Of a stretch of 64,000 nt of DNA, positions 6,036 to 47,600 are shown piece after piece (positions within the stretch are counted from its first letter, which is position 1; the number at the start of each line of letters is the position of its first letter). Under the pieces are notes generated by a model. That model worked only from the letters and a program-made list of their open reading frames with translations, did not search any database and was not told where the DNA came from. The translations under genes and the position numbers were made by a program. This DNA comes from Mytilus californianus (lineage: Eukaryota): positions 87,358,001 to 87,422,000 of the forward strand of contig NW_026262723.1 in the NCBI RefSeq assembly GCF_021869535.1, given 5' to 3'.

Positions 6036-7520
6036 TCATTCTTTATAGAAATGATAAAACATTATAAAGCATTCAAAATGATAGAAAATTACAAACGGAA
6101 CCCAGAAATGCTTAAATTTCAGCCAAGTGGTACTGTCAAACAGCGGTTGATTAATAAAACCCTCGTACGGAACATACATAAATGTATACGAAAACCAAGT
6201 GCTGAAATTTACAAAACACATCACAAGAAAGATGTTTCGGATTGATAATACAGAATTGGAACTGCTAAACTTTCGGTATTGCTTCATCTGTAGAATAAAA
6301 GTTGTCTGTAAAATCGTGACGGTAACTCTAACAACTGTATTAAGATGGATTCTGATGTCATTACGAAATATCCCGAGACTTTCAAGAATGTAGTAACCAC
6401 AAGTAGCAAGAGATGTTGAAAGGATAATAAAATGTTGAATGTTGATTATTTTCCGTGGCCTTTCCTTTGGTTGTAGTTCTCCAGCTAATGCATGATAACA
6501 TTTGATTGTGAGTGGTATTCGCAAAATGTTTCCGAAAAGATAGTATGCACTGGGTGCACCAGCTTGGTTAAACTTTGTTATGTACATTAAAATGCACTGG
6601 ATCATAATGAAGGATAAAAAAAACAATATAACAAGTCCGACTATACACTTTGATTTCCTATTCATTGGTGTATGCCTGTTAAGAACTGCTATATTTCTCG
6701 ATAAAAGCGGATAATTTTCTCCATTGTCTTGAGAAAGGGAAGTAGAATCAAATAAATGCATGTTGTCAAGTGACACGTACTGCTTTGGCCACATTTGAGA
6801 AATGAATATCAAACTTAACAGACAATATTCAAGCAACACCGGATCCAGAAATGGTTTTAGTATCCTTCCTGCTTTATACAGAGTTGTGGCGTTATTGCAT
6901 AGGTGTCCAGAGTTATTCAAAATGTCTTTTATGTCTTCAAAGTACAAGTCTAAATTGTTACGTGTCCACAAAGAAATGTTTGCAACAAACAAAAACATCA
7001 GTATATAATAAAAACACCTAATATTTGCAAATCTGAATCGTGAAAAATAAACAATGAATATGGTTTGTCCGAGATCGAAAAGCCAAGTAATTATATAGTA
7101 AATTGATTTCTGTGATAATGACTCACGTACATTGCATTGGATATGAAGAGCTAATTTCATCGCCTGTGATACTATATTTCCGAAGCAAAAGAGCCACAGA
7201 AACGCTAATTTCAGTCTGTCAGTAACTTTTCGTCTATGAAAAACCTTCCAATCGCTTTTTATGTGAACTAGAAAGCTACAAGTGATTAAGATACATATGG
7301 CAAAAGCTAGTAATCCAACCATCACCCATCTAGAATCTTTGGTTGGAAATATCAACATCACTTCAAGAACCGCTATAACTAGAGTCGTCAATAGCACTAG
7401 ACCGGATATACTTGCATCATGAACCGAAAATCTGCCATTTTCACGCTTTGTCACTAGTCCTGCTGTAAAAGGCATTACCAATGCAGCATGTATAATCCTT
7501 CGTAGCATATCTAGCATCAT
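6036..7520 (-). CDS. Otopetrin-family (OtopLc-like) 12-TM channel, copy 1; single coding exon, 494 aa
   Basis: Twelve hydrophobic segments with a two-fold internal repeat: QTIFI (TM4)/QTTFI (TM10), ANISLW (TM5)/VNFSTW (TM11), PVLLEYCLL..QMWP (TM6)/PFVIFYHFE (TM12). Uninterrupted ORF. Acceptor ttcttacag lies 7 nt before the ATG. Confidence 0.9.
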   Translation of the reverse strand: MMLDMLRRIIHAALVMPFTAGLVTKRENGRFSVHDASISGLVLLTTLVIAVLEVMLIFPTKDSRWVMVGLLAFAICILITCSFLVHIKSDWKVFHRRKVTDRLKLAFLWLFCFGNIVSQAMKLALHIQCNVRESLSQKSIYYIITWLFDLGQTIFIVYFSRFRFANIRCFYYILMFLFVANISLWTRNNLDLYFEDIKDILNNSGHLCNNATTLYKAGRILKPFLDPVLLEYCLLSLIFISQMWPKQYVSLDNMHLFDSTSLSQDNGENYPLLSRNIAVLNRHTPMNRKSKCIVGLVILFFLSFIMIQCILMYITKFNQAGAPSAYYLFGNILRIPLTIKCYHALAGELQPKERPRKIINIQHFIILSTSLATCGYYILESLGIFRNDIRIHLNTVVRVTVTILQTTFILQMKQYRKFSSSNSVLSIRNIFLVMCFVNFSTWFSYTFMYVPYEGFINQPLFDSTTWLKFKHFWVPFVIFYHFECFIMFYHFYKE

Positions 7521-10500
7521 TGTGTGTCTGTAAGAAATTAATCATTCAATTTACTATTCGCATGTTCACTTAAGTTGCTGTACAAATTTACAATGCATGA
7601 GAATCCGCAGTAGACTGAAATTTCCTCCGCTGGATTTTTAACATATGAAAGCTTTCATTCGGTGAAATGTGATTCTGCTAATCGAAACCGAGAATATTAA
7701 AGGTCTACAGATGAAGGTACACATGCATGTCGCTATGCATATTCTTCCTTTTTTCGGAAAATATAGAATTTAAACAACAACAAAAAGAAGTAAATTATGA
7801 TAGAAAGTATTTGTTTTCTGTAATCATTTCCTTATTTTTCAACACCATATTGTTTTTTTTTTTTTCTCATTTTCTGTTATAACGAAACTGTATTGTTAGT
7901 ATTAAGTGCTGTAGTTTAATTTCGAACTGATAATAGACAACAAATTTCAAAGGAATTATTTCCTCGTCACGTTTCTCATACAGTATACTTAAACTGTGGA
8001 TGTTGTGAGTTGTCCGTTTGTAAACAGCCTCCAAAGTCTTCCAAAGAATCTGGCAGAATATTTTAAACTCAAATGAGCCTTTATTATATCATGTTTATAA
8101 TGTTACCCAGCAATTACGTGGAGGTTTTGTTCCAAAAATCAAAATTTTATTCTCCAAAGTGACATTTTAGAAAACAAAGTACTTTTTTCTAAAGAAAACG
8201 ATTACTTTCTGTTTCAACAAAGAAGCTAAATGAAAGTTAAAATACATTTTGGAAAAATTGTCTTTTTAATGATGAGAATTTGATTAATGGAAATAAGTTA
8301 AGAACTTACAGAAAATTTAAAGTGAAGTACGAACTTGAAAATCATCTTTTAATGAATTTAGATTAAAAATGATATAAAAAAATATCCCAAAATATCCCAA
8401 AATAAGAAGAAACAGCAAGCTATCTATTTAACGTGGTAGATACATTAAAACAGCTTTAGAAAATAGATTGCGTCCCCTATGGAATATAGAGGTGGAAGAG
8501 AAATGCAATTTTTGACATTGTTCCTAGTTTAATTTCAATGACTAATTGAAAAAAAAAAATTTTGTGAGGAATATGATTATTATAATGCCATAAGTAAAAT
8601 GTATAATTACAGAAATAATATTAACATATATTCATGAACTGTGTATTTTACATGTATGGATTTATATGACTATATTTTTCTCTTTCGAATAACCTAATAT
8701 ATAAATGAACATATGATAAAGGTAAGCAGGATTTTTCTTCATTTTTCATAACAGTTCTTAATGTAATAATTGTTATGCTAATTTGAGGAGAGGCATGTTG
8801 TGTAGCAATTAAGAAAAAAAACAAACAAACAAACAAACTTAGATTTTTTTGTCAATGTTTCATATTTGTATTGTTTATTTGTATTTTGTGCTACATGTGT
8901 ATTTTGTAACAATCTCATTGTTTGGATTTAATACTAATAAATTTTTTATATCTTATATACAGTAGATACATCATTTTCATATTGTAAGTGTTCCGATCGA
9001 TTGTTCGAATTCAAATATTTTTGTTGCCTGATTTCGGAAGACGATGAAAATCAATACATATATGTTTTCTAAATTTCTGTGTACTTAATGTGATTGAAAA
9101 TTACATAACACTTTTCTTTGCATTTAAATGCAATTTAAAAAAATAAAAACACTAGGCAAAGTTTTGTCACAAATTAATGTTCAAATTTGAAATATAATAA
9201 ACTTTTATTTCTTTAAATTTAGTATTTACTAATGAGTCTTATGTAGCCCCTTATTGAAGATAACTTAAAACGCGCGCCTGGCGTAACAAATATTAGCCTT
9301 GTACCTTTGATGATTTTTTTTCTAAAATAAAAATAAAAATAAAAAGAAATGTATTACAAAATTTCGTATTGGTTATCATAAAACCTTATTGTACATTTAC
9401 TAGATGCTGTATATTTATATCAAAATCAAACATTCGACCTGAACATGCATGATATATTTGCCACTGGACGTTCAACAACCAACAACCAACAATCAACAAT
9501 CAATAAAACCAAACATTCTGAGGATATTGCATGTGCAACATGATGTCTCCTTTTAGCTATAACGTTAATATTGGATGAGTATACACTTATATGGGACAAG
9601 CATTTAAAAGTTTTTACTACTGTAGTTGGGACTTTTAATATCATGGTAAAATTGACCTCCGATGAATCCGGCTATATTTTATGCCCTTATTCTTCTTCGA
9701 GTGTTTTAGTCTTACACATCCTTGGCTTTTAAATGGTTTGGTTTGAGCGTTCCCGATGAAGGAAGATCCATAAAAGCGCTTCTGACGCACGAAAGTTAAA
9801 GTGTTTTTGGGTCAGACTGTTTTGGGTCAGACTGTTTATCAAAAAATACGGATACTATTTACAACTGCAGACCCAACGGAACCATTAGATCTTAAGGTTT
9901 TATTTCTCTAAAAGCTTACATTCTAAAGCAATTTTCTATATCCAATGACCACAATTCCTGCAAAAATTGCTCAAATCTATCTGTATCTCCTTTAGCTTAC
10001 TATACATCAAATGTTATATCCATTGATTCAGGCATTACAGAAAAAAGTGCGGAGAACTGATATTTTTCAAGGCATTTTTATATGTCAAAGTAAGAAAACT
10101 CTAGCAAATAATCCCTCAACCGGAACGAAACTCAAACTAACTTGATCTGAAACGTACTATGATAGTACATATACTGTACACCATATAGTAAACCATTTGG
10201 TTTAAGAATTGCAGCAAAAGTGAGCGGAAATTGATATTTTCAGGCAATTTTCTATATTTTAGGACCAAAACGTTCAAACAAACGCTAAAATCCTGAAGCT
10301 TAATAATAGTTATGGAAAGCAACCTACAAATGATTTGTAATAGTGAGGCCAACATAACATTATGGTATGAATTGCAAGAGTAATCTCAAAAAAAAATTAA
10401 ATTAAGGAATGCATCTCCCTCTTGAATGGCTTTTATTCCTTGTCCGTGTTCAGCTTTACATGGTCCTTTTTGGTTTTTCAAGTATTTTGGCTTTAGGCAT

Positions 10501-10614
10501 CACCGAAGAGACATTAGTTGTTGAAATGCGTATCTAGTCCAGTAAATTTGGTACCTTTTATGTTATTTCGATTTTAAGATTTTCTTCAATGTAATTTTCC
10601 AATTTGTATTAAGT

Positions 10615-10888
10615 ATAAATAAGAAGATGTGGTATGAGTGCCAACGAGAAAACTCTCCATCCAAGTCACAATGTATAAAAAGTTAACAATTATAGGTCAA
10701 AGTACGGCCTTCCGAACAGCAAGCTATAAAGGACCCTAAAATGACTAGTGTAAAACAATTCAAACAGAAAAACCAACGGTATAATCTTTATAAAAAACGA
10801 GAAACGAGAAACACTTATGAACCACACCAATAAACGACAACCACTGAACAACAGGCTCTTGACTTAGGACAAGTGCATAAAAATGCAA
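10615..10888 (+). repeat. Dispersed repeat family A, subtype B copy
   Basis: aagaagatgtggtatgagtgccaa..ctctccatccaagtcaca..tataggtcaaagtacggccttc matches 30774-31060 and the reverse complement of 49400-49727. Confidence 0.85.
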
Positions 10889-12819
10889 AAAGGACTACAT
10901 TTTGATCGATATGTTTCCATTGTTAAATACTAACACCCTCCTCATAACCTATCACAAAAAACTTACCGATATTTCGATATGCTGATAGTAACCAGTGCTT
11001 TCCTCTCTTTCGCACGATTAAATCAAAGCAGTTCAGACAAAGAAATAAAACAAGAAAATATTTTCCCTATTTTCTAATTAATTTTCTTAATTTTCAATTT
11101 AACAATGAACATGCTTCCTCGTTATAGCATCAATTACTATACCATAATAAAACAGTGGAAATATATTTGTTCTCTTGTTCTTATACGAGGAAATTAAGAG
11201 AGTATTACTTTCTTTTAAGTCTTTAATTTTCCTTATATAAATGATTAACAATTTTATTGTGAGTTTCAGGTCATCACATTCCTCTCTAGTCATCTTACTT
11301 TTATGTGCTCCGAATATTTTGAATGACACCAGTTTTATTTTATGAAGATAACATATTTAGTTAATTATATTCGACGCTTTTCTTTTGCTTAATAAACAAG
11401 TTCATGATCTAAATCCAATAAAACATTGAGTACACATGTTGGTTGTCACACTTGAATCTACAACGGCAATTATATTTTGATCGACGCTTGCAGATCAAAG
11501 TGTACATTTCTGTGGGTGTTACTCCTCATAAATTCAATTAAAAAAATTGAAAACGTAAGTCTATTCTTATTTAAAGAATATTTTACTGGTAAAGTGTTGT
11601 TTTTCCATAACATTTTTGCTCATTAAATCAAGACGGATACTGCAACTAGTTTAAATTCCTGTTTCCGGTTAGTTGAGCAAGAAAAGTACATTTTTCTTCT
11701 AGTTTTAATCAAAATCGTTAACAGGCGATTTTTGTACTTATTTGGCGTTTTTACTATATTTTTTTCATATGTAAACATGATCGTTATATGATTTATTGAT
11801 CAAAAGTTTCCCCTGGAACAAAAAATCGTTGCTCGCCTTGCTTCTTAAAACGCCATAGAACTTACCTGATATTTCTATCAATAATGGTCTATGTGATTCT
11901 TGATTTAATATAAATAACATTAAATTTGGGATATACGTATATAAGACAGAAAACTTTGTCGGAAAAAGAATAGTTTCTATTTCGAACTTCCGTATTCAGT
12001 CATGAAAGGTAATCAAATTTAAGTATACGAATGCTTTATACATTTGGAAGGTTTTGTGGCAAAAAAAAGAGTCGACCTCTACTAATAAGCTGTGATGGAT
12101 TAACTTATCACAGGATATCTTTCAGTAATGGATTTTATTAGGAATAACACGTGTGGTACTATTTGAGAAGGCACTACAAAGCCTTCCAGAGGACAGAGGT
12201 TCACCCCTAGTTTTTTGTTATTTTGGTTCGTGTTGAACAATCATCAGTGTTCTCTTTAGTGTTTTGTTGATTGGTGTTTGTTTGTTCGTCCTTTTTTTAT
12301 GGCCATAGCATTATCTCTCTTTTTTTTTACTATTGTTTTCTTTTAAATTATCTTTTGGAATATTGTTTTACTTTGCAAGGATATTAAGATATGGTTCGCC
12401 TTGAAGTAAATTAATATTCTTTTAACAAATTCACAAAATAGGGAATAGTTTTATTGTAAGTATGCTATCATGTATCGATTGACTGACTTTGAAAAAAACA
12501 ATCCTAAAAATAACTACTGTTTGGAAAAAATCTAGCTATTCTAACGGAATTGAAAGTGGCAAATGCTTCTACAAAATAACTTTAGAGGTCAGCACAAGAT
12601 ATTCAACAAAAGACAAGTGTTTGTACAATGTGCCAAGCACTTAACGAATCGAGTATAAAACTTTTTTTTTTATCTTATATTCTTATAAGAGTATCGTTAA
12701 TTTAAGATCACTTGTATTACACATATTACACTTATAGTAGGATATAAAACAAAGAAATTGCTTTTTAAAATAACAAAACATGTTGCAATTCACCAACAAT
12801 GCTCCTTTTTATTGATAGG

Positions 12820-13135
12820 AGCAATCGTCTAACCACAATCTCGTCTTCCTTTTCCCCAAATGTGACCTACCGAATTAGACTTATCTCCGGATTTGTACTT
12901 ACACGAGCAACTCGACGGGTGCCACATTTGTAGGATCTGTTTACCCTTCCGGAGCACTTGAAATCACCCCCGGTTTTGGTGGGGTTCGTGTTGCTCAGTC
13001 TTTTGTTTTCTATGTTGTGTTTTGTATATTGTTGTTTTGTCTTTTGGTCTTTTTCTCTTTTTTTGCCATGGCGTTGTCAGTTTATCTTCGACTTATGAGT
13101 TTGAATGCCCCTTTGGTAATTTTCGCCTCTCTTTT
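12820..13135. repeat. Dispersed repeat family C (ccttccggagcac...gttcgtgttgctcagtcttt...cgcctctctttt)
   Basis: A partial copy lies at 17590-17829 and a degenerate copy at about 12140-12360. Confidence 0.75.
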
Positions 13136-13495
13136 ACATTAAATCGCATTGGCTTGTGGTCCAGGTGAGCGAATCAGTTTTAACATTTCAATTATCCTTC
13201 CCGTAGTTTTGATTTTAGTAATATTTCCTTCCTTGTTTAGTTCCGCATATAAACAGGTGAGGTAAAGAACTTTGATTGGATAAATTAGCTACCGATTGTA
13301 TTATTATTTTCACTTCATTGACAGTGCGTCTTTTATATTTTTTTCAGTTGTTAGATCATAATTTAAAAAATATTTAAAGTTAACAAATGAATGTGTTTAG
13401 AAAGTTTATTTTTCGCTGTATCAGATTATTTTGGCAACAAAACAACAATAAAATGTGTTAGACTTCTTTAAAGTTCTATCCTCAGAAGGAAAAGA

Positions 13496-15127
13496 ATGAC
13501 ATTCTTTAAAGGAGTAATTCGAGCTGCATTTGTTCTACCGTTTTCGGCAGGTAATGTAGACGAGGGGAATGGTTCACATGATGGCAGCTTGTCTGGACTT
13601 TTACTGATGACCACTTCAATAGCTATCCTTTCTGAGATACTGATGATTGGATTTTCAACTAACGAGACTATTTCAACTAAATTCAGCGTTGGGTTAGCAG
13701 TCTTATCATTTCTATCTGCTCTAGCGATTGCACTTTGCGTGTGTATCAGTTTATACGTGTCATCTAGAGGGAACAGTGTGTTTCATGTTTTACCTTGGAA
13801 TAAATGTAATACAATAAGACTCAGGTTTTTGTGGATTTTTTGTTTCAGCTGTATTATTTCAAGAACATTGGACATGACCTTTTATATCGATTGTCTAACA
13901 AACTCAATGACCCTGAAATTTACAGTAGACACAATAGTGTATGATCTTGTCTGTATAGTATTTTACGTGGTGCAAACTGCATTCATTACATTTTTTTCGC
14001 ATTCGCGATTTACCAGCCACCTTGGTATTTATTATGGATTACTTATTATATTCCTGACAAATATTTCTGTAATATGTCATGCCTTGGCTTCTACTTTTAA
14101 ACCCATGGATAATGAAATTTTAAATTCGTCGACAATAAGCCACCATACTTCGAGTAATACTTCTTGCTTCAAGTCAAGTATGTACGAGGTATTGATGAAG
14201 ATTAATCCTTTCTTGTTACCGGCATTTTGTGAATATTCGCTTGTTTCGATTACATTTATTATGAATATGTGGCCTACATTTGGATTGAAAAGGGAAACGT
14301 TCGTGCTTGATGATATTTCGCTTGACGGAAACAAAGAAACGTCAGAGTCGACGAGCAATTTGAGAGGGTCGACAAATGAGAGGTCAGAATCGACAAATAG
14401 CAGGCGGAATAATGAGCGCATTCCTTTATTAGACAATACTGGAAACACAAGTAACAACCGACAACATCGTATAAGAAGATTTATAAGCATAACTGTTCCT
14501 ATTCTTCTAAATATGCCATCAGTAATATTATATTGTTTACAAATTTCGAAAGTACCATCTGTGCAGTTGGGCAAAACAATATCAATAGCTGTAGTAGCTA
14601 CTATTGAGTTGCTTTTGTATGTGAAATGCTTTTACTCTCTTCAGACTCAATGTAAACCTTTGAAACAAAGGGAATGTACCTCGCTTGATTCTAGTGATTA
14701 CATTTTAATTGCAAGTGTGGTTGCAGCAATTTCATATTCCACGGTAAAACTTATGTCAGATATTTACAATGTCAACTCTGAAACCACATATGCTATAGGT
14801 TTTTATAAACTGGTTATTGATATATTCGCTGCTTATTTCCAAACAGTTTTCATCCTACAAATGAAACAATATTCGAAGGCCTTTAATATATCCTCGTGGA
14901 CGTCTGTGGAATACACTTGTTTATTAATGTCTTTTGTGAATTTATGCTCATGGGCGGCTGATACTTTAATAGTTTCACAATATGTTTACAAAAATGACGC
15001 ACCATATCATTTCTTTGGGTCATCTGATTGGACAGAAATCTTTGGATTTTTATACCCATTTGTGATCTTTTACAGATTCAATGCTTTTGTATCCTTTTAT
15101 GGTTTGTATGACCGATTGAAAAATTAA
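13496..15127 (+). CDS. Otopetrin-family 12-TM channel, copy 2 (most divergent paralog); single coding exon, 543 aa
   Basis: QTAFI/QTVFI, TNIS/VNLCSW, PAFCEYSLVSITFIMNMWP (TM6) and YPFVIFYRFN (TM12, close to the otopetrin FYRFH motif). Acceptor ctatcctcag lies 10 nt before the ATG. Confidence 0.92.
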   Translation: MTFFKGVIRAAFVLPFSAGNVDEGNGSHDGSLSGLLLMTTSIAILSEILMIGFSTNETISTKFSVGLAVLSFLSALAIALCVCISLYVSSRGNSVFHVLPWNKCNTIRLRFLWIFCFSCIISRTLDMTFYIDCLTNSMTLKFTVDTIVYDLVCIVFYVVQTAFITFFSHSRFTSHLGIYYGLLIIFLTNISVICHALASTFKPMDNEILNSSTISHHTSSNTSCFKSSMYEVLMKINPFLLPAFCEYSLVSITFIMNMWPTFGLKRETFVLDDISLDGNKETSESTSNLRGSTNERSESTNSRRNNERIPLLDNTGNTSNNRQHRIRRFISITVPILLNMPSVILYCLQISKVPSVQLGKTISIAVVATIELLLYVKCFYSLQTQCKPLKQRECTSLDSSDYILIASVVAAISYSTVKLMSDIYNVNSETTYAIGFYKLVIDIFAAYFQTVFILQMKQYSKAFNISSWTSVEYTCLLMSFVNLCSWAADTLIVSQYVYKNDAPYHFFGSSDWTEIFGFLYPFVIFYRFNAFVSFYGLYDRLKN

Positions 15128-17589
15128 CTCGACTTCAATGGAAGGCGGTGCTATTTGATGACATAAATGCTTGGTTTTATCAAAGTTTGATAAAAATATA
15201 AATTTGAAAGTTATATATTAAAAGGATATATACCAGGAATGACCAAAAATATTGGACAGACTTTTATCGCATTCATTTATGACTTTGGACTAAATCTTAA
15301 CACAAATGTTCTTATATTTTATTCTCACGTTCTGTCTTTGCAGGGAACAGCTAACACTTAAGCGCTGCCAATAGGTACGAACTAAAAAATCTAATAATAA
15401 CTGTTTTATTATACATTGTACCTCACCAAAAGAATGAAGCTTCATTTACATATTTTTACTTTAATTATAGCTATGACTATGATACATTAAAATTCCAACA
15501 AACTCTTATAACCATCATTTATATTTATTGTTGATGGAGGTATACATGCTTGGATGTCAATCGGGAGCACAGTAATTTTTATATGTGTAATATATAAATA
15601 TTATGTATAACCATGTCAAGATTTAGATATACCATGTTTATGGTCTTTGTCATTCACAAGATATTTAATAAATACTATCTCCCTTCTTTTCATTCTTCTG
15701 TGTTGTATTTTTTTTTAAATAGCACATTAATAGTTACAAGAAGGATATTGGCTAAACTTTAAAGATATTGGTATAGAATTACCTATTTACAGACGATACT
15801 CAAATGTATATTCCAGGGGGACATACTGTTTTCTATTTTCAACTATTGTGTCGATCATGTCTCTGTGCGTAGTTTCGAGTGTACACCAAAATGTCTACGT
15901 ACGATGTTTGGCACATTGATTACATTTGTATCCTTTCATAAGTATTTTTATTTAAACTATGAGTTTTTGTCCAAAGTGGAGGTGTGCGTTAACATGTTTT
16001 CTGTTCTGGACACTGTATCTATCTAATTGAACAATTTTATCAGATAAAAAGTCTGGAAAATTTGACTGATTACTGAATTGCTCATGAGTATATATGTTGG
16101 ACTCAAATCGACGGCCGGTCTCAAATCGACGTCTGTTACTGAAATCAGGGTCCAATCTGATGTCATAGTAAATTAGAATTCCAAATTGACGTCCAATTCT
16201 TTGCTACTCTAATCGACATAATTTTGCTGGACTTGCAGCATGACATTTCAGTCGTATAGTTGTTGCTCCAGATGTTGACAATACATAATTCCTATCAGTT
16301 ATCAATTCTTATATTTCTGAAATTTGTCTTACACAGCTTCTTGAGGCTTCAAACTTCTAGCCTTTAGTGCAAAACTACAAAAACTGTCAAAAAAGCCATA
16401 CTTTAAGATCTTGTAATTTGTATTTAGATATGAGCGAAGGCCGTAACCAAAAAGATAGTCTGCTGTATAATGTATCTCACAAATAAATTAATGTGAGTAA
16501 AATATTTTTTCGGGTAAGGACTTGGCTGATATCTTATTTTGCTGAAAAATAGGGGAAAAAATGCCATTTTGATTCAAATATGTCAATTTTTACATGTCAT
16601 AAAGTACATTTTTGCACTAAAGGTTCCATATTTATATCGTCATAATTATTTATGTATCACATAGACATATTTTTGAAAGACTTGAAGAATTTTACTATTT
16701 TTGCGATATAAGGGCCTTATCATGCCTCCTTTGTTCACGAGTCAAGACTCAAAGCGATTAAGAGTATTGTTTAGCAATTTATGTACTGATGACAAACTCA
16801 ATTTGGCCTCTGTGTTTCCATTTTGTTCTTAGGATGTGTTTTTTTACTATAGCTTCAAATCTCCTTTATTCATATCCCTGAATGTCTTTTTGTTTTTTGT
16901 GGTTTGGTTTAGTTAAAATATATTTAATTTGCAAAAACAAAGCAAAAAAGACGAGACAAAAGCTACTCAAACTTGGAGTGTCTTCTCCTTATATACATCA
17001 TATTACAATAGATTTTTTCAAGAATGCAAATATTAACTTAAAATTGTAAAATCTATAATATTAGACATAACAATTTTAAAAAACAAGAAAAGAGAAGAAA
17101 AAATCTATAATAAGAAGTGACGTGTATGTGTGCGTGCGCTTTAATCATTTCATCTTTCTCGTATACACCCAAAATCGCATTATATTAGAAACTTTTGATT
17201 TTTTTTTAATCTAATCAAAAACATTTCTGAATATTTCATGCTCATATATTCAATATATATTGCTACGTGTCCCGAGACTAGGCAGCCAGGCAACCAAATA
17301 AAATTGTTTATTAAGATAGCCCTTCAATCTGAGTAAAGGGAATTTGAAAACTTATATATTTGAATCCTCGTGTGGAGCTCCATAGCGAGATGGGGCAGAA
17401 ACACTATTAATCTTAAATCTGTTGTTGGTTTGCTTCTGCATTGATGCATTTCCCGCTTCTTTTCTTTTCTTTTTTTTATATCATTTATGGTAAAGATGAG
17501 ATTCGTTCCTTGTTCATTTAGTCTTCTGTTTAATTGAGAAGAGATAGATCATCAAATTGTTAACTTATTCTCACAAATAACTCACCTCC

Positions 17590-18633: not shown

Positions 18634-18719
18634 AGCACGTTATTAGCCCGGTATCTTTGATGCTCGAGTTTTTCATCCAATTTTTGGTACACTTCTACAC
18701 ATAATTTCAAATATTCACT

Positions 18720-21288: not shown

Positions 21289-22794
21289 ATGACGAATCTA
21301 CTATGTAATATTTTGCGTGCTACTTTCATCGTTCCTTTTTCTGCTGGTCTCATTAAGGAGCGAAGAAATGGAGGATTTTCAATACATGACGGCAGTATTG
21401 CTGGAGTAGTTCTTTTGACAACAGCCATGATTATTATCTTTGAAATAATAGTTGTACTGCCAGTGAATCAGTCTCGCTTGTTGATGGTAGGACTTTCAGG
21501 TCTAGCGTTAATCTGTCTAGTGTTGTGTAGCATTGTAGTTCGATGCCGTTCTACCTGGGTCGAAGTTAAGACTGTGAAACCAAGCGATCAAATGAAACTA
21601 AAATTTCTCTGGTTATTTTGTATCGGGAATATCACGTATCAAGCCTTACAACTAGCAACGCATCTTCTATGTAAGATCTACAACCTCCAAGTCACACTGT
21701 TTTGGACGTTCACCTGGACATTTCAGATTTGTCAAACTGCTTTCATTCACTATTTTTCTAGATTTAAATTTGCAAATGTGTTGTGTTTGTATTACGGTTT
21801 ACTGGTTCTCTGTGTGACAAATATTTCAATGTGGACACAGCAAACTTTCTATACGAACAGAATTAGGCTCGAGATAAATATTAGCGACCTCATTAATAAT
21901 ACTATCTCAAACTGTTTATACGGCGATGGACTTGCAACAGCGGTTGGATTTTTGAATCCGTATCTGCAGCCTGTACTACTAGAATATTCTCTTCTAAGTT
22001 TAATCTTCCTTTCCGAAATGTGGCCAAAAAAGAATGCTGAATTTGAGACACTCAACAATTCTCTTTCAAGAAGCAGAGACGATGAAAACCAGACATTACT
22101 GGTAGAAAACGATGACCAAGATGGTGAACATCATCCATTATTGCCACGCTGTAGTGTCTGGCATAAAAATTCAGTATGTGTCCTGGTGATTGGATTTCTT
22201 TATAACTTCTCATTTATGCTAATTCAATGTATTTACATTTATGGACCGAGGGAAAAAATGACAGATTACAGGAAATTTTCCTTCGATGTCTTCTTTTGTG
22301 CTAATATAGTACGAACGCCGCTTATAATCAAATGCTTTTATGCCTTAAATGGACAACTAAGATCAAAACAAGAATCTCATACTGGAATGAGCTTAGATCA
22401 GTTTGTTATAATCACTAGTTCCTTTGCAACTTGTGGATTATATATTGCAGATTGTTTCAGATTGAGTGATTCACCAGCAAGTACCAATCTAGGAGAAATT
22501 CTGTTTAAAATCAATGTCGTCCTCCGAGTTGTTGCTACACTTTTTCAAACATTATTCATTTTGCAAATGAAACACTACAAAAAGATAGGAGACCAAAAGC
22601 CTTTTTGTTCAGTACAAAATACTTTTTTGTTTGTATCCTTGGTAAATCTTGGAATATGGATGTCTTACACTTTTGTTACTCCCAGATATCGTCTGACAAA
22701 ATCTAGCTTTTTATTGGAAAGTTTTTGGTTTCCATTTGTTTTATTTTATCATTTCGAATGTTTTGTCGCATTTTACAAGTTTTTTCGGGCATAA
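21289..22794 (+). CDS. Otopetrin-family 12-TM channel, copy 3; single coding exon, 501 aa
   Basis: QTAFI/QTLFI, TNISMW/VNLGIW, PVLLEYSLLSLIFLSEMWP and PFVLFYHFE. Acceptor ttaattgcag(cag) lies 7 (or 4) nt before the ATG. Confidence 0.92.
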   Translation: MTNLLCNILRATFIVPFSAGLIKERRNGGFSIHDGSIAGVVLLTTAMIIIFEIIVVLPVNQSRLLMVGLSGLALICLVLCSIVVRCRSTWVEVKTVKPSDQMKLKFLWLFCIGNITYQALQLATHLLCKIYNLQVTLFWTFTWTFQICQTAFIHYFSRFKFANVLCLYYGLLVLCVTNISMWTQQTFYTNRIRLEINISDLINNTISNCLYGDGLATAVGFLNPYLQPVLLEYSLLSLIFLSEMWPKKNAEFETLNNSLSRSRDDENQTLLVENDDQDGEHHPLLPRCSVWHKNSVCVLVIGFLYNFSFMLIQCIYIYGPREKMTDYRKFSFDVFFCANIVRTPLIIKCFYALNGQLRSKQESHTGMSLDQFVIITSSFATCGLYIADCFRLSDSPASTNLGEILFKINVVLRVVATLFQTLFILQMKHYKKIGDQKPFCSVQNTFLFVSLVNLGIWMSYTFVTPRYRLTKSSFLLESFWFPFVLFYHFECFVAFYKFFRA

Positions 22795-22810
22795 TTTTAT
22801 TATATATGTA

Positions 22811-27017: not shown

Positions 27018-27033
27018 CCCAGGAATGATTATT

Positions 27034-34402: not shown

Positions 34403-35899
34403 ATGAATCAACTGTGCAAAATTTTGCGTGCTACATTCATCGTTCCGTTTTCTGCTGGTCTGATAAAGGAGCGACGAAATGTAGGATTTTCAGTACATGA
34501 CGGCAGTATTGCTGGAGTAGTTCTATTGACCACAGCCATGATCATCATATTTGAAACAATAGTTGTACTACCAGTGAATCAGTCTCGATTGCTGATGATA
34601 GGACTTGCAGGTCTGGCGTTAATCGGTCTAGTGATGTGCAGTGTTGCAGCTCGATGCCGTTCTAACTGGGTAGAAATAAAAATTGTAAAACCTAGCGATC
34701 AATTGAAACTAAAATTTCTGTGGTTGTTTTGTATCGGGAATATTATATATCAAGCATTGCAACTAGCGATGCACCTCGTCTGCAAGGTTTACAACTTCCA
34801 AGTCACACTATTTTGGGCGTTCACCTGGACATTTCAGATATGTCAAACTGTTTTCATTCACTATTTTTCTAGATTTGAATTTGCAAATGTTTTGTGTTTG
34901 TATTACGGTTTATTGGTTTTATTTGTGACAAATATTTCAATGTGGTCACAGCAAACTTTCTATACATACAGAATTAATCATGATATAAATATCAGCTATC
35001 TCATTAATAGCACAGTCTCAAACTGTTTATACGTTGATGGACTCTCTAAGGCAGTAGGATTTTTAAATCCGTATCTGCAACCGGTATTACTAGAATACTC
35101 TCTTCTAAGTTTGATATTTCTTTCCGAAATGTGGCCAAAAAAGAAGGTTGAATTTGAGACACTCAACATTTCCCTTTCAACAGACATAGACGATGAAAAT
35201 CAAACATTACTGGTACAAAATGATGACCTGGATAGTGAACAACACCCACTACTGCCGCGCTGTAGTGTCTGGCATAAAAATTCAGTACGTGTCCTAGTAA
35301 TTGGTTTACTATACAATTTCTCATTTATGCTAATTCAGTGTATTTACATATATGGACCGAGGGAAAAAATGACAGATTACAGATCATTTTCCAACATTGT
35401 CTTCTTTTGTGCTAATTTAGTACGAACGCCGCTAATAATCAAGTGTTTCTATGCATTGAACGGACAACTAAGACCAAAACAGGAAACTAATAGTGGGATG
35501 AGCTTAGATCAGTTTGTTATTATAACAAGTTCTTTCGCAACTTGTGGATATTATATTTTAGATTGTTTCGGTGATGCATATCCAAATTCAAAACCATTAG
35601 AAGTTCTGTTTCGAATTAATGCTGTCCTCCGTGTTTTTGCTACACTTTTTCAAACATTATTTATTTTGCAAATGAAACACTACAAAAAGATAGGAGACCA
35701 AAAGCCTTTTTGTTCAGTACAAAATACTTTTTTGTTTGTATCCTTGGTAAATCTTGGAATATGGATGTCTTACACTTTTGTTAATCCCAGATATCGTGTG
35801 AGACAATCTAATTTTTTATTGGAAAGTTTTTGGTTTCCATTTGTAATATTCTATCATTTCGAATGTTTTGTCGCATTTTACAAGTTCTTTCGAGCATAA
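34403..35899 (+). CDS. Otopetrin-family 12-TM channel, copy 4 (close paralog of copy 3); single coding exon, 498 aa
   Basis: Same motifs as copy 3. Start placed at ATG 34403 (MNQLCK), which aligns with the copy 3 start and follows acceptor attttacag by 8 nt. AATAAA at 35904. Confidence 0.92.
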   Translation: MNQLCKILRATFIVPFSAGLIKERRNVGFSVHDGSIAGVVLLTTAMIIIFETIVVLPVNQSRLLMIGLAGLALIGLVMCSVAARCRSNWVEIKIVKPSDQLKLKFLWLFCIGNIIYQALQLAMHLVCKVYNFQVTLFWAFTWTFQICQTVFIHYFSRFEFANVLCLYYGLLVLFVTNISMWSQQTFYTYRINHDINISYLINSTVSNCLYVDGLSKAVGFLNPYLQPVLLEYSLLSLIFLSEMWPKKKVEFETLNISLSTDIDDENQTLLVQNDDLDSEQHPLLPRCSVWHKNSVRVLVIGLLYNFSFMLIQCIYIYGPREKMTDYRSFSNIVFFCANLVRTPLIIKCFYALNGQLRPKQETNSGMSLDQFVIITSSFATCGYYILDCFGDAYPNSKPLEVLFRINAVLRVFATLFQTLFILQMKHYKKIGDQKPFCSVQNTFLFVSLVNLGIWMSYTFVNPRYRVRQSNFLLESFWFPFVIFYHFECFVAFYKFFRA

Positions 35900-36101
35900 T
35901 GAAAATAAACTTCGTATGAACTTGTAATGACAACACACGTACTTGCATTGACCGTTTTGTTATCGTTATAAAATTACCGAATTCTATGTTAATTGTATGC
36001 ATTAATTTTGTAGTTTGTTTTTAATAAGTTAAAAGGACAAAGTGCGATTATGGACGTTTGTTAGTCGTAATTTTTCACTGAGACATTACAGTATATATTA
36101 A

Positions 36102-39346: not shown

Positions 39347-40041
39347 TGTTTTAATCGTACCGATAAATGACTTTTGTTATTATATATTTATTGTATAAGT
39401 ATGTTTAAACATTGTTAATTCTAAAACTTTTATTATCCTTGTCTCTGTTATTACACTCGGGACACCTCTGAATTGTTTATTTCAATTGACGTACAATGAC
39501 GTTTTACCTATTTTGGTAATTACCAGTTCCGGTTTAGGTAATTTAGGTATTTCCTAAATGGTAAATGGTAAACCAAATCGGTAAAGTGGATTACCTAAGT
39601 ATAAATACGGCGGAGGATTCAGATAAGTCTTCAGCACGATTTTACCCTATGCAAGTAACTATCGCTAATTTCAAGCGATTTTAATATAAATATAGATACC
39701 AGTTACCAGACCCAAGTAGTGATAAGGGAGACGACATATTACAATGTACGAGGAGACAAAGTCCGTATAAAGTGGGTTTGATAAATCCTTTACAATTCCA
39801 GTTACACTTACAAAATAACTTCGCAAGTTAAACTATTTAACGAATCTTTTGGTATCGAGTTTTACCATTTACTGAATACTAAATTACAATTAGTAAACTT
39901 TCTGAGTATATTTTTCCGCTATCCATTTACTTTATTTACAGAAGAAGGCTGATAAAATGTCTGTTTATTAGAATTGAACACTGTTAAGTTATTTAAAATA
40001 TATATGTATTGTTGATATTTAATGCGTATTAAAGTTAAGTA

Positions 40042-40228
40042 TTAGATACAATACAAAGGTAACAAAGAAACAGGCCGGTAACAAGCGTTGCCGGATAGTT
40101 TTTCTGCACGAGTAGTCAGGTGAAGGTCCGAGGCGATAGCCGAGGACCTTGACCTGACTACAAGTGCAGAAAAACTTTACGGCAGTTTGTTTCCGGCCTG
40201 TTTTTTGTTACCTTTGTATTGTATCTGA
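40042..40228. repeat. Near-perfect ~187 bp palindromic (foldback) element with a GC-GATA-GC apex
   Basis: The left arm agatacaatacaaaggtaacaaa...gtagtcaggtgaaggtcc pairs with the right arm. Centre: ggtcc-ga-ggc-gata-gcc-ga-ggacc. Confidence 0.9.
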
Positions 40229-42384: not shown

Positions 42385-42976
42385 ATAAACAACAACATCA
42401 ATATGGTTCTTTCTTCTATTACAATTTTAATAATTTTGACACCAGTCTTTAGTAAAGATTCTTATTCTACCATCAAAAAGTTGGGGTTTTTTTTTTGTGT
42501 GCTATATTTAGTATTTGTGATCTAAGATAAATTGACCTTAAAATCGATCTTATTATTCCTCTCATTGCATGTGATCATCTATTTTGTTTAGGTTCAAATC
42601 CAACGTAAGGTCCATTAGTAATCATTCGGAAACCCTCTTTCTGCACTTCTTTTCGTATCTGCAATTATCAACATAAGGTCGTCAACAACAACGAATTGTT
42701 TATAAACAATAACATCAATATGGTTCTTTCTTCAATTACAATTTTAATAATTTTGACACCAGTCTTTAGTTAAGATTCTTATTCTACCATCATTAAGTTG
42801 GGTTTTTTTTGTGTGCTATATTTAGTATTTGTGATCTAAGATATATTGACCTTAAAATCGATCTTATTATTCCTCTCATTGCATGTGACCATATATTTTG
42901 TTTTTGGTCCAAATCCAACGTAAGGTTCATTAGTTATCTTTCGGAAACCCTCTTTCTGCACTTCTTTTCGTATCTG
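42385..42976. repeat. Local direct duplication, ~275 bp unit (42385-42661 and 42702-42976)
   Basis: Both copies run from aacatcaatatggttctttcttc to cttcttttcgtatctg with few differences. Confidence 0.9.
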
Positions 42977-43546
42977 TAAACTTTACCTTTAATATATTTA
43001 CAACATACTCAATAAGGATATTTCTAGCATTTTATTTGATCATATATCCAAGTTTGGATCTAACTCCAAGTAAGGTAGCTAAGTCTCATCCGTTAACCCT
43101 TTTCTCAACTGATTTAGTTTTATTTTTAATATCTCTGATCTTTACCTTTACAATCGATAGAGACTTCCTCGCAATATGTATGTTTTACATTGCTTCTCTT
43201 ATATTTCAAAGGTCACGTCAGCGACCGGGGATATATTTGAGATGCCGTGTAATCAATCTGCATTTAGGTATTAAATAACCATTTGATCTTTTCTCTGGTA
43301 TTAAACTTTTTCTAACAGAAAAGCTATTTGTTTTGTTTTATAAAAAAATAAGAAGATAAGATAAGAATAGTGTCCGTATCAAAAATTCACATTATGTGAA
43401 GAAAAGCAGACGTTTTCTTTATCAAAAAGGAAGTATGTTTTGTAATGTCTACATGAAATGATTTTTAAAACGGACATATTTTCTAGCAAATTATGATTAT
43501 ATTTAAAGAATGTGTATTTATAATCTATCATTATTACTTTTCACTA

Positions 43547-44100
43547 CAACTATACGTCACCGTACGGCCTTCAAAAATTACCGAAACCCACACCGCATAG
43601 TCAGCTATAAAAGGCCCCGAAATAAAAAATGTAAAACAATTCAAACGAGAAAACTAATAACCTGATATATGTAAAAACAATGAACGAAATCAAATATGAT
43701 ATACAGCAAAAAACAACAACCATTGAATTACAGGCTCTTGACTTGGGACAGGCACATACAGAATGTGGCGAGGTTGAACATGTGAGCGGGCGCCCCCTAA
43801 CCTGGGACAGTGGCGTAACAGTAAAATATATGAAGAAACTATAAAATCAGTTGAAAAGGGCTTAACTTATCAGATCGATACAAAGCAGAAAAAACAAGTT
43901 ACAAAAACGCAGACCGGACGTGGCAGGGAGTTTATACATCCCTACAACAAGAAAGACAATACGTACAGATCTGAGAGAACTCGCAGCTACTGACAGCTAG
44001 TTCAAAGCCAATAACAACTAATAAAAAAATCATGTATCTAAGACTGAAGTATCAATCAGCACACATCCAACATCCAATTCATTTAGTGTAAAGACGTCAT
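43547..44100 (+). repeat. Dispersed repeat family A, long copy (5'-truncated)
   Basis: Colinear with 1858-2414. Confidence 0.85.
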
Positions 44101-46118
44101 TACAAAATGTCACATCCGGTGTCACCTGATAGGTAACTTCACACTTATTCTAAAGATTATATGGTTTCTTTTATATGAAATTAGTACAAAATTGAATTCT
44201 TCTGAGAAACACCAGGGCACTTCCGGTTATATTATGTCGTCCTATATTGCAAAAGACTTCATGGCTTATAGTGTACCAGTATGACGTTATAGCAAATATC
44301 AAAATCAAATGGCCTTTGATCTTGACTTCAATGTGAAGGACAAATGTTAAGGAACTCTAATCAAAAGCCTCCAAGTCTTATAAGTATGATTAAGAAGATA
44401 TCCTATACTAAACAGCTTAATTTGAATATTTAAGGGGAGAAAAATCATATAAAAAGTCACTAGAGCACTTCGACCCAAATCTATTGGTGTAACGTCAAGA
44501 CGAATGAACTGTTCAATATCATACACCAAATATGTAATCGACATGTTGCGAATCAAAAGCAACATTTTAGAAGCAAAAGTTGCGGAAGAAAAAAAATAAT
44601 AATCAGAACAAATTCAACAGGTCTTTGCACGGAAAAGTAAAAATAAAATAAACAATTCTACTCAATTCAATCATGGGTTTATACATCTATGATTCAATAA
44701 ACGACAGTTTTGTACATTGCACGTATTTTTTGAAAAGTCGTCGTGAGTTAAAATATTAAAAACTTCCTGTTTCGATTAATTTACAAGGAAACAATACAGA
44801 TAATGATGACTGAAGATCAAACTAAAAACGAAAATTCCCGTGAATCACAATAAAACAGGCAAAGAATACTAATCGCGCAGTGTATATCTCTACAGGTCTA
44901 ATAATAAAGAGTATACAGAACTAGGTTGAATTGAATCGACACGAAAGGTAGGAACTTAATGTATCATATTATCTGGATGAGTTACATAGTACGAGGAATA
45001 AATTAGAATTGTATTTCCTGTTTATTGTGATGATAAATGTTTAATGTATGGTATATCGTCTAAGAGTCTAGACATGGAAAGTATAATTAGAATAGGAAGA
45101 GGAGATTAATTTTCGGGTTCAATCCACTAACACGTAGTAACAGTTACCACAGTGTTATTTTACGATGACATAGTTTTGCTCATCACAAAAATTCTTTTAT
45201 TGTCAATTGAGTTTATCTGAAGTAACAATTTCAAAAATGTTTAGTTCTCAGAAATCTTTATGTCAATTCCCCGTTTCAAAATCTATTGCTTTCCGGTATA
45301 TATTTAAAAGCATACACCAAAACATTGTGTTGGTTATCAACATTCTTAAATAATGTAAAAAGTTAAAATTGCGTCACGTTATTTTATTTGCATTTTTGGT
45401 ATACAAACAAAACAACTCACCAAAGATACCAGGCTTATAATGTTGTACGCCTGATGCGTGTTTCGTCGACAATAGACTAATCAGTGACGCTCGAATGAAA
45501 AAAACTTGAAAGCAAAATAAAGTACGAAGTTGAAGAGCATTCAGAACCAAAATTTCGGAAAGGTTTTACCAAATACAGCTCTGTTAGTACTTGCAAACAT
45601 ACTCTGTTCCTGGAGTAGAAAATCCTTAGTATTAGTATTTCGATCAATGTTTTGTAATCTGTGAATAAACTCCTATAAATTTTGAAATTGTGAATTTGGA
45701 CAACACATCTGTTGTCACATTTCTGTTTCCAAATTCAAATTCTATCAAACTATTTCGGCAACCTGTCACTTCCATATACAAAAATATAGGCGTAAAACAC
45801 ATATTTTTATAATTTTTCTGCATTCGATGCATGTTTATGAATGAAAGAAACGAGAAGAATAACTAATATCATTTGAAGCGTTTCTTGTATGATTATTACA
45901 TTTTGCTTACTAAGACCAGTTTAGTATTATGAACAAATACAAGATGATTGATATCAGATCATTAAAACATTTAGTATTGCTGTCCTATAAATTAAGTACT
46001 GTGACTATCTATTTCAGGAAAGGAAAAATGGTTGAAATATTGACACCGTTTAATGGTCACCTCAATAACTAAATATCCGTTTTACATGATCAACTTCCAT
46101 CTTACAGCGAGATTTAAA

Positions 46119-47600
46119 ATGAGACAAAAATTGAAGAAAATCCTGCATGCTGCATTTGTTATGCCATGGACAACTGGTTTGATTAAAGAATATCGTAACG
46201 GTGACTTTTCCATTCATGACGGCAGCATTGCTGGAGTAGTTATTTTGACAACAATTATTATCATGATATTTGAACTCATGTGTTTCTTTCCTAAAACTAC
46301 TTCCCGGATAGTAATGACTGTTTTGTTGATCATTGCAGTTTTCACCTTGATTTCCCTAAGCCTTTCAGCTTGCAGGAATAAACACTGGACAGTGCCAAGA
46401 AGTTCAAAAGGCAGTCACAGTTTGAAATTGAAATTCCTTTGGCTATTTTGTGTAGCAAATATTACTTTCGAAATAGTGAAATTTGCAATTTATAGCAAAT
46501 GTGACCAACTTCCAGATGTTCTACTTTATTACATTTCAACTTGGATATTTCAAATTTTGCAAACATTCTTCCTTCATTACTTTTCCAAATTCATATTTAA
46601 TAATATATTGTGTCTTTATTATGGATTTCTTGTTCTTGTTGTCACAAACTTTTCACTGTGGACACATCGAACTATATTTACATATTATGAAGCCAAATCA
46701 TTTTTAAACATCAGTGACATAAGTGGAAATGTATGTAATGATACAAAATCGTTTGTTCCGATGAAACAATTTAAACCATTTTTAGATCCAGTGTCTTTAG
46801 AATACTGTCTGTTATGTGTGATACTCCTATCCGAGATGTGGCCGAGAGCAAAATATCCCGAACTTCAAAGTCGACAACTACAAGAGTCCTCTTCGAGGCA
46901 AGACACAGAAGAACATCAGTGGTTATTACGTTGCAATAGCAATGTTCCGACTAGAACAGTTTGGAATAGAAAATCCATTATAGTTTTAATTATTGGTATC
47001 TTGTATATGATTGTATTTATTGTTATTCAGACATTGTTTCTTAACATTGATCAACTGAGAAATAATTACTTGCACGTAGCTTTCGTATTTTATGTTTGTG
47101 GAAATTTCATTCGGATACCACTTACAATAAAGTGTTTTTACGCATTTTCTGCACAACTCCGTCCTAAATCAAATGCTCAAACGGTCACAGACATGAAACA
47201 TGTAATTATTTTAGTTAGTTCAATGGCTACCTGTGGATATATAATAGCAGAATGTGTAGAGAATCTTCGCTACGGTGAAGTAAAAATCATACTTAATGCC
47301 ATTTTCCGTGTGCTAAGCACTGTTATGCAAACTTCATTTATTTTACAAATGAAACAGTACAAACGAGTAGACAGGACAAACACTATTATGTCTGTACAGA
47401 ATACATTTTTATTCATGTGTTGCATAAACTTCAGTTTTTGGTTTTCATATACCTTTATATCACCACAGTATACTGTCAGATTGCAAAGACACTTTTTTGA
47501 AATTGCCAGCTGGCTAAAAATTAAACATTTCTGGTTCCCTTTTATTATATTTTACCACTTCGAGTGTTTTATCTCATTTTATGACTTCTTTAGAAAATAA
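46119..47600 (+). CDS. Otopetrin-family 12-TM channel, copy 5; single coding exon, 493 aa
   Basis: QTFFL/QTSFI, TNFSLW/INFSFW, PVSLEYCLL..SEMWP and PFIIFYHFE. Start placed at ATG 46119 (MRQKLKK) by paralog alignment, 11 nt after acceptor catcttacag. AATAAA at 47666. Confidence 0.92.
   Translation: MRQKLKKILHAAFVMPWTTGLIKEYRNGDFSIHDGSIAGVVILTTIIIMIFELMCFFPKTTSRIVMTVLLIIAVFTLISLSLSACRNKHWTVPRSSKGSHSLKLKFLWLFCVANITFEIVKFAIYSKCDQLPDVLLYYISTWIFQILQTFFLHYFSKFIFNNILCLYYGFLVLVVTNFSLWTHRTIFTYYEAKSFLNISDISGNVCNDTKSFVPMKQFKPFLDPVSLEYCLLCVILLSEMWPRAKYPELQSRQLQESSSRQDTEEHQWLLRCNSNVPTRTVWNRKSIIVLIIGILYMIVFIVIQTLFLNIDQLRNNYLHVAFVFYVCGNFIRIPLTIKCFYAFSAQLRPKSNAQTVTDMKHVIILVSSMATCGYIIAECVENLRYGEVKIILNAIFRVLSTVMQTSFILQMKQYKRVDRTNTIMSVQNTFLFMCCINFSFWFSYTFISPQYTVRLQRHFFEIASWLKIKHFWFPFIIFYHFECFISFYDFFRK

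Follow-up and report, generated by a model that had tools for sequence, protein, structure and literature searches.

How does an otopetrin-like protein manage without the histidine on which the proposed relay of this family depends? In otopetrins a Glu of transmembrane helix (TM) 6 and a His of TM12 meet at the inter-barrel interface as a proposed proton relay, in which the His pairs with an Asp of TM9 (PMC6483595, PMC11343839), and this His was described as absolutely conserved and as the proton acceptor (PMC11343839). The question is raised by 64,000 nucleotides (nt) of Mytilus californianus (NCBI RefSeq assembly GCF_021869535.1, contig NW_026262723.1, positions 87,358,001 to 87,422,000 of the forward strand), referred to below as the window, a stretch free of N runs that carries five intronless otopetrin-like genes. 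The current relay model relies on transfer from the TM6 Glu to the TM12 His, and dozens of genes in this genome keep the Glu, the Q-N-Y triads and the hinge prolines with no such His; the charge of its replacement is apparently balanced by residues of TM8, TM9 and TM10. We favour, with moderate confidence, a charge-compensated rearrangement of the C-barrel vestibule and the inter-barrel cavity in a diversifying family. The genes of the window offer natural test cases for the Glu/His relay model of otopetrins.

Five window genes and their family

In a scan for open reading frames (ORFs) the window contained exactly five long uninterrupted frames of 494–543 amino acids (aa). Their likely coding sequences are given below with positions counted from the first letter of the window, and their types are named after the residues at the canonical Arg and His positions of TM12.

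6036-7520, minus strand: copy 1 (c1), intronless otopetrin-like gene, 494 aa, HxE type; TM6 E231, TM8 R334, TM10 R398, TM12 H481/E483
13496-15127, plus strand: copy 2 (c2), intronless otopetrin-like gene, 543 aa, RxN type; TM6 E246, TM8 E371/K377, TM9 D401/K418, TM10 K438/D442/Q449, TM11 N482/D489, TM12 Y526/R527/N529
21289-22794, plus strand: copy 3 (c3), 501 aa, HxE type; R342, R413, H488/E490, TM9 start D-Q
34403-35899, plus strand: copy 4 (c4), 498 aa from the first ATG, HxE type; R341, R410, H485/E487
46119-47600, plus strand: copy 5 (c5), 493 aa, HxE type, start placed as in the 493-aa orthologue P0001; E228, R332, K338, K360/H361, E378, R397, S400, Q404, N437, Y444, Y479, H480, E482

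The identity of c1 to c3, c4 and c5 is 41–45%, and that of c2 to the other window copies is 26–30%. A sixth member (L005, C143:87347872-87349356, minus strand), located 8.6 kb before the window begins, shows that the tandem array extends past the window; it shares 89% identity and the R/R/H/E residues with c1, and the ratio of nonsynonymous to synonymous substitution rates (dN/dS) of this pair is 0.26.

Membership in the otopetrin family was examined by profile and by structure. The Pfam family PF03189 (Otopetrin) was matched by c2 (E 4.4e-22, 79 bits), c4 (E 5e-14, 52.5 bits) and c5 (E 2.8e-18, 66.5 bits) at a cut-off of 27.8; c1 and c3, searched singly against Pfam, gave no PF03189 match at E<=0.01, being too divergent for a match of their own, but have 41–45% identity to c4/c5. 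A profile of the window family matched OTOP2, OTOP3 and OTOP1 among the PDB sequences (E 6e-22 to 9e-12), and it was profile searches alone that found them, the single-sequence PDB search with c2 having found no otopetrin. AlphaFold2 models of c5 and c2 each contain 12 TM helices, with a predicted local distance difference test score of 81.4 and a predicted template modelling score of 0.81 for c5, and 82.5 and 0.83, respectively, for c2. When the c5 model was compared with the PDB by Foldseek, the best 12 matches were all otopetrins (E 1e-8 to 8e-5), and the c2 model, aligned by VIA-align, reached Z 25.9–32.7 and a root-mean-square deviation (rmsd) of 2.5–4.8 Å to all 12 otopetrin entries, the best unrelated chain giving Z 11.5. 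The predicted models show that the window proteins share the two-barrel, 12-TM otopetrin fold. As the preliminary description of this locus had noted, the Q-N-Y triads of both barrels (c1 Q152/N181/Y232 and Q405/N438/Y480) are invariant in the alignment of all five copies, and so is the TM6 E-Y, which stands in a P-x3-E-Y motif (c1 E231, c2 E246, c3 E232, c4 E231, c5 E228). The C-barrel triad maps to Q433/N528/Y571 of zebrafish OTOP1 (zfOTOP1) in the PDB alignments. The Pro and Phe of TM12 are retained by the family, and the hinge prolines of TM6 and TM12 are strongly constrained.

The five genes are part of a far larger set. A search of the whole assembly with the five-copy profile gave 63 matches, about 40 of them full-length, stop-free, intronless and clustered on several chromosomes, so that at least 40 intronless otopetrin-like genes are present in the genome. 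Their TM12 classes are HxE, RxE, RxK, HxK, RxN, KxE, RxQ and YxK, and His at the canonical TM12 site occurs in none of the ~40 intronless paralogs. Loss of this His does not separate the two paralog types of the preliminary description, being common to all of these paralogs, which have E, K, N or Q at the site. In a maximum-likelihood tree of 39 paralogs, c1, L005, c3, c4, c5, L007 and L008 form one fully supported clade (HxE), and c2 falls in another clade with L014/L015/L017 and L019/L020 (RxK). Two sets thus do exist as originally described, but they are deep clades at ~30% identity and not recent sisters. The depth of this split implies that each residue state arose once or a few times, and that the differences between c1-type proteins and c2 are few old events.

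A profile search run exhaustively on 1.84 billion cluster representatives gave 1,555 relatives, and 151 full-length sequences were aligned (most of the best 150 of the 1,555, the matches of the first search and the Mytilus paralogs). All named HxE members are from Mytilus, and so are all named homologues of the window copies. In the literature search, no paper describing a bivalve otopetrin expansion or His-less otopetrins was found.

TM12 classes in the 151 sequences: RxH (canonical) ~30; HxE ~25; RxK 22; RxE 13; RxQ 12; HxK 8; RxT, RxS, RxN, RxF, RxL and others fewer

Canonical, intron-containing genes that keep the His are present elsewhere in the genome at no fewer than three loci, with last exons reading FFRFH (two loci) and FYFFH (one locus). 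One region (C165:96605869-96686721, L047-L050) holds tandem canonical-type last exons (FFRFH), one of them intact and three copies 78–86% identical with 3–6 in-frame stops each, which implies that canonical otopetrins are also duplicating and decaying here. The FYFFH locus (L051, C35:17858212-17859030) keeps the relay His and has Phe in place of the FYR Arg, the reverse of the c2 combination.

Two polar sites and the charges of TM8 to TM12

Residues were mapped onto solved otopetrins by HMMER profile alignments to the PDB chains 6NF4, 8UG6, 6NF6, 6O84 and 8UG4, and this mapping reproduces the published numbering (zfOTOP1 Y571/R572/H574 and N528; D439 of C. elegans OTOP8, CeOTOP8). In the PDB profile search the FYHFE of the window aligns with FYRMH of zebrafish OTOP1 and mouse OTOP2; the motif FYR[FM]H, given as canonical in the preliminary description, was found in all solved OTOPs, and FYHFE was found in none of the characterised channels compared here. 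The reading of TM12 as FYHFE is borne out on the plus strand at 22744-22758, 35849-35863 and 47550-47564; at 6072-6086 it holds only on the minus strand, c1 being a minus-strand gene. The translation of c2 at 15068-15082 is FYRFN. Thus in c1, c3, c4 and c5 the canonical Arg is replaced by His and the canonical His by Glu, and c2 retains the Arg but has Asn in place of the His.

c5 to zfOTOP1: Y479 = Y571; H480 = R572; E482 = H574; N437 = N528; Q404 = Q433; S400 = E429

The two TM12 positions have separate roles in the literature, and the roles that had been assigned to them at the outset agree with it. R572 and E429 form a salt bridge of the C vestibule, in which reversing either charge alone lowers the current and reversing both restores part of it (bioRxiv 10.1101/542308), and H574 works with the TM6 E267. 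The His is zfOTOP1 H574, CeOTOP8 H567 or XtOTOP3 H669, and its TM9 Asp partner is XtOTOP3 D509, CeOTOP8 D439 or mOTOP2 D369 (PMC11343839). Because the Arg belongs to the vestibule and the His to the relay, FYHFE alters two distinct sites. The four residues of the preliminary description do not all line one pathway, since the literature puts the TM12 Arg site, TM10 and probably TM8 in the C-barrel vestibule, and the TM12 His site in the inter-barrel cavity with TM9.

The charge differences of TM8 and TM10 were found as described. Six residues before the K-C of TM8 there is Arg in c1 (6519-6521), c3 (22312-22314), c4 (35423-35425) and c5 (47112-47114), and Glu in c2 (14606-14608); the residue seven places ahead of the conserved Gln in TM10 (position -7) is Arg in c1 (6327-6329), c3 (22525-22527), c4 (35630-35632) and c5 (47307-47309), and Asp in c2 (14819-14821). 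Among 23 sequences of the HxE clade, with ~40–45% pairwise identity, the TM8 residue is R in 19, K in 3 and T in 1, the TM10 -7 residue is R in 22 and K in 1, and the TM12 His and Glu are present in 23/23. Such clade-wide conservation of the TM8, TM10 and TM12 residues indicates that they are not chance variation. At TM10 -4, the site of zfOTOP1 E429, the five copies have A, V or S (Ala in c2, which keeps the Arg); none of them has the pair of an FYR Arg with a polar or acidic TM10 partner, the Arg being His in the other four, and the TM10 charge of the window copies stands at -7, one turn outward of -4 on the same helix face.

Where these residues may face was estimated from a helical wheel built on the 151 sequences, with helix limits and depths taken from the AlphaFold2 models. 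In TM10 the c5 residues N393, R397, S400 and Q404 all lie within 6–46 degrees of the polar face. In TM8 the polar positions 322/325/329/332 form a stripe, which ends at the charged position 332. The Arg position of TM12 is ~50 degrees off the polar face of that helix and the former-His position ~150 degrees off, with 200 degrees between them. In the c5 model R332 of TM8 and R397 of TM10 are each ~15 residues above the cytoplasmic helix ends, and K338 of TM8, Q404 and Y479 are at triad depth. This geometry supports, but does not prove, that the TM8, TM10 and TM12 Arg positions share the C-barrel vestibule; the TM12 Glu or Asn belongs to the inter-barrel cavity.

The charge at TM10 -7 has no predictive value by itself. 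CeOTOP8, which conducts, has R483 at -7, followed by Q486 at -4 and Q490 as the triad Gln (mapped with a canonical Mytilus exon as a bridge), and acidic residues stand at -7 in several His-bearing bivalve otopetrins; judged by this alignment, the -7 charge is ordinary variation among otopetrins. A charged residue in the middle of TM8 is rarer, being R or K in the HxE clade and L022 and E in c2, L024 and L026, and position 332 is hydrophobic in most other sequences, His-bearing ones included.

Further differences between the two types were found from TM9 to TM11 (c5 numbering; the HxE clade is represented by 23 sequences):

TM9 position 378: HxE clade E 13, D 6, Q 4; c2 K; c2 relatives mostly R (V in the L019/L020 group)
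TM10 position 393: HxE clade N in 21; c2 K; c2 relatives T, S, L and others
TM11 position 444: HxE clade Y in 23/23; c2 D (D489); c2 relatives mostly D (N in the L019/L020 group)
TM9 start, positions 360/361: HxE clade x-H in 17, D-Q in 6 (c3/c4 type); c2 S-D; c2 relatives x-D or x-Q

Most of the sampled otopetrin-like representatives, including His-bearing ones, have Asp at this TM11 position, seven residues beyond the triad Asn, and the HxE clade has lost it. At the start of TM9, the candidate Asp positions read D-Q in c3 and c4, S-D in c2, Q-H in c1 and K-H in c5, with a register uncertain by one residue. In 17/23 members of the HxE clade a His thus adjoins the site of the usual TM9 partner of the relay His, and a carboxylate occupies the site of that His itself, which makes an inversion of the TM9-Asp/TM12-His pair possible in this clade.

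Do these charges depend on each other? Coupling was examined in 29 paralogs filtered to <80% identity, with permutation p-values that ignore relatedness. The net charge over positions 332, 397, 400 and 482 has a variance of 0.78 vs 1.53 in column shuffles (p = 0.003), and the sign at 482, the former-His position, opposes the summed charge at 332/397/400 (r = -0.60, permutation p = 0.0003). Of 12 sequences with Glu at 482, 9 have a sum of +1 or +2, and of 14 with Lys there, 13 have a sum of 0 or below. Three close paralogs on C165 (69.23-69.36 Mb), L022, L024 and L026, have at 332/400/482 the residues K,E,E; E,E,K; and E,K,E, which gives the appearance of one positive charge shifting between three coupled positions. 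The charge coupling among the TM8, TM10 and TM12 sites, judged on these alignments, is suggestive and not established. A contingency of 378 by 397 in the 151 sequences gave 24 opposite-sign vs 3 same-sign cases but only ~4 vs 3 lineages, and was not used as evidence.

Taken as a whole, these observations may be read as charge-compensated rearrangements of two polar sites during paralog diversification. The first site would be the C-barrel vestibule, formed by TM8, TM9, TM10 and the TM12 Arg position, and the second the inter-barrel cytoplasmic cavity, with the TM12 His position and the start of TM9. Throughout the expansion the relay His has been replaced, by Glu in the clade of c1, c3, c4 and c5, by Asn in c2, and by Lys or Glu elsewhere. 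In the c1 type the FYR Arg has given way to His, a TM8 Arg and a TM9 acid (E/D378) have been gained and the TM11 Asp lost (Y444), and c2 has a mirror set with TM8 Glu, TM10 Asp, TM9 Lys and TM10 Lys, in which the TM11 Asp and the TM12 Arg were kept. Such diversification probably served the handling of pH or ions, or chemosensing.

Conduction, neutrality and selective maintenance

Several points weigh against this reading. The preliminary description held that the charges co-vary; the opposition of the former-His charge to the TM8/TM10 charges stands, but the tree contains 5 E/K changes that give 4 independent contrasts, 2 concordant, 0 discordant and 2 uninformative, with which significance is unreachable and co-variation is unproven. 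L019/L020 have only basic residues at the coupled sites, breaking the charge balance. The proposed facing of the TM8 residue derives from helical periodicity and depth only. The TM9 register is uncertain by one residue, as HMMER puts the canonical Asp at K360 of c5 and MAFFT alignment with bivalve His-bearing proteins puts the usual acid at H361. Finally, replacement of the His by Ala or Gln kills the current of XtOTOP3 (PMC6483595), and by analogy Glu, Lys or Asn there may abolish conduction altogether.

The rearrangement might also say nothing of gating or selectivity. Polarity swaps of salt bridges that hold the C barrel together (TM9-378/TM10-397, with TM8-332) could be structurally neutral and have been flipped by drift in two old clades, so that the two types would work alike. 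Positions 378 and 397 are indeed opposite in sign in both types (E/R vs K/D), the sites sum to a net charge of about 0 to +1, and both polarities occur at TM10 -7 when His-bearing otopetrins and CeOTOP8 are considered. In mouse OTOP1 the charge-swap double mutant E433R/R586E shows a partial rescue of current, from which its authors concluded that exact positioning is not essential (10.1101/542308). Yet the c1 type lost also the relay His, the FYR Arg and the family-wide TM11 Asp, which is more than one bridge, and the residues are strictly conserved inside each clade. We regard neutral drift as rather unlikely.

Another explanation, which we find similarly doubtful, is that the proteins have the otopetrin fold and do not conduct, with the Glu/His relay broken, and that they sense pH or ligands, partner canonical otopetrins as regulators or in heteromers, or have a role unrelated to flux. 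Such a loss would agree with the conservation of the His as proton acceptor (PMC11343839), with the abolished current of XtOTOP3 H669A and H669Q (PMC6483595), and with the His count at the site, 0 of ~40 paralogs, in a genome where canonical His-bearing genes coexist. However, the strong constraint on the TM6 Glu, the triads and the hinge prolines of TM6 and TM12 is hard to explain without permeation-related chemistry, and a Glu or Lys in place of the His might yet carry protons. In the reading that we favour, proton passage from the TM6 Glu to the TM12 Glu may persist in the c1 type, with the TM9 His nearby, and c2, where Asn leaves no titratable acceptor at the site, is the likelier candidate for lost or rerouted conduction. 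Changed gating, changed selectivity and a non-conducting sensor, the outcomes proposed in the preliminary description, are all possible from these residues.

A bolder extension of the rearrangement reading, speculative and quite unlikely in our judgement, is that the HxE proteins are working channels with an inverted TM9-His/TM12-Glu pair and a cationic vestibule (two Arg and a His), of which c2 is the acidic-vestibule counterpart. If this is true, their pH dependence, rectification or selectivity would be unlike those of known otopetrins, e.g., alkali- or anion-favouring, the expansion would be a natural library of electrostatic variants, and the 'absolutely conserved' His would be dispensable for otopetrin function. 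More generally, if any member of the family conducts, the relay model needs revision and the family supplies swap variants ready for use; should no member do so, there is a second role of otopetrins, other than as channels. Either way, the expansion is relevant to pH sensing and handling by intertidal calcifiers.

Several lines of evidence show that the five window genes are functional. The dN/dS values of eight recent paralog pairs, including c3/c4 (0.20) and c1/L005, are 0.20–0.44. Orthologues of the window genes exist in several Mytilus species, and the c2 orthologue of M. coruscus is 97% identical, with unchanged TM segments and with every c2 residue listed above kept, the E, D, R and N of TM8, TM10 and TM12 among them. 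Transcription was followed for c2:

13336-15673, plus strand: c2 transcript, approximate; the ORF and ~0.5 kb of 3′ untranslated region, from RNA-seq reads of run X21

In these reads the first mate over c2 is on the minus strand only, which in most stranded libraries means plus-strand RNA; at c2 they contain no splice joint inside the ORF and leave the flanks uncovered except for a repeat at 12835-13168. A 2,092-nt contig of run X1, apparently transcript-derived, covers 13556-15647 and shows 3 differences. Transcripts of c2 come from the sense strand and are unspliced across the ORF. As expression evidence for the c1 type, a Logan contig of the c5 orthologue was considered and rejected, being colinear with the genome, including the gene relic described below, so that RNA and DNA are inseparable in it. 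Together these data show that the otopetrin-like expansion is a large branch specific to Mytilus or bivalves, which selection maintains and of which at least a part is expressed. That the genes are decaying retrocopies or annotation noise, i.e., intronless ORFs without function, is scarcely credible and was excluded: the genes are intronless, the c3/c4 similarity stops near the borders of the coding sequence, and relic fragments and stop-containing copies are present in the genome, but five frames remain open over ~500 codons each, dN/dS is 0.20–0.44, c2 is transcribed, orthologues exist in several Mytilus species and the predicted folds are confident.

Several other features were observed around these genes. 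The repeat at 12835-13168 is of very high copy number and lies ~0.35 kb upstream of the c2 start codon; its summed contig depth in a DNA run is ~6-7.5e5 vs ~40 in the flanks, RNA reads lie on both of its strands with many internal joints, and it is probably a short transposable element. The nucleotide similarity of c3 and c4 (86%) begins ~70 nt ahead of the ATG and does not go beyond the stop when 3-kb flanks are compared; either the flanks diverged past detection, the synonymous divergence (dS) being 0.41, or only a transcribed core was copied. Just downstream of c5 a profile search of the genome detected a relic:

47832-48053 (C143:87405832-87406053), plus strand: otopetrin-like relic, degenerate coding end of TM11-TM12; E 2.2e-7, with one TGA and one TAG inside

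The same arrangement follows the c5 orthologue in the Logan contig, which is from another sample (L046), so the relic is old. Further along, at 55912-56501 on the plus strand, two adjacent ORF pieces match consecutive parts of PF10142 (PhoPQ-activated pathogenicity-related protein, AprA-like), at profile positions 1-41 and 43-76 and with scores just under the cut-off; they are likely to be the initial exons of a neighbouring gene that is spliced.

Comparison with known otopetrins

With vertebrate OTOP1, OTOP2 and OTOP3 (6NF4, 8UG6, 6NF6, 6O84) the window proteins share the 12-TM two-barrel fold (c2 Z 29–33, rmsd 2.5–3.5 Å over 350–410 residues), the TM6 P-x3-E-Y, both Q-N-Y triads and the TM12 P-x3-F-Y. 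Sequence identity is nevertheless 13–18%, and FYRMH of the vertebrate proteins corresponds to FYHFE or FYRFN in the window. The window proteins lack the acid at TM10 -4 (zfOTOP1 E429) and have a charge at -7, and they differ also by the charged mid-TM8 residue, the K-C motif of TM8, and intronless genes in a family of >40 copies. The constitutively conducting C. elegans OTOP8 (8UG4/8UG5) has in common with the c1 type the Arg at TM10 -7 (R483), the TM6 Glu and the TM12 Pro-x3-Phe. It keeps, however, FYRFH (H567) and the TM9 D439, whereas in the window proteins the His site is occupied by Glu or Asn, and in the c1 type the start of TM9 by His or D-Q.

Closer to home, the canonical Mytilus genes (L047 and L052, both FFRFH, and L051, FYFFH) and the oyster 'proton channel OtopLc-like' protein XP_078335171.1 keep the triad Gln and the TM6 Glu as in the window, but they also keep the TM12 His, have no K-C motif and are hydrophobic at TM8-332. 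Loss of the His is found in other bivalves too, in proteins annotated as uncharacterised: Ylistrum balloti XP_060067877.1 (RxS), Argopecten irradians XP_069134978.1 (RxT) and Ostrea edulis XP_048746279.1 (RxI). These scallop and Ostrea edulis proteins resemble those of the window in the absence of the His and in the presence of the triad Gln and, mostly, of the TM6 Glu. All of them retain the FYR Arg; their residue at the His site is neutral and the TM9 acid is usually still present, whereas the Mytilus family is charged there (E/K) and its HxE clade is also devoid of the Arg.

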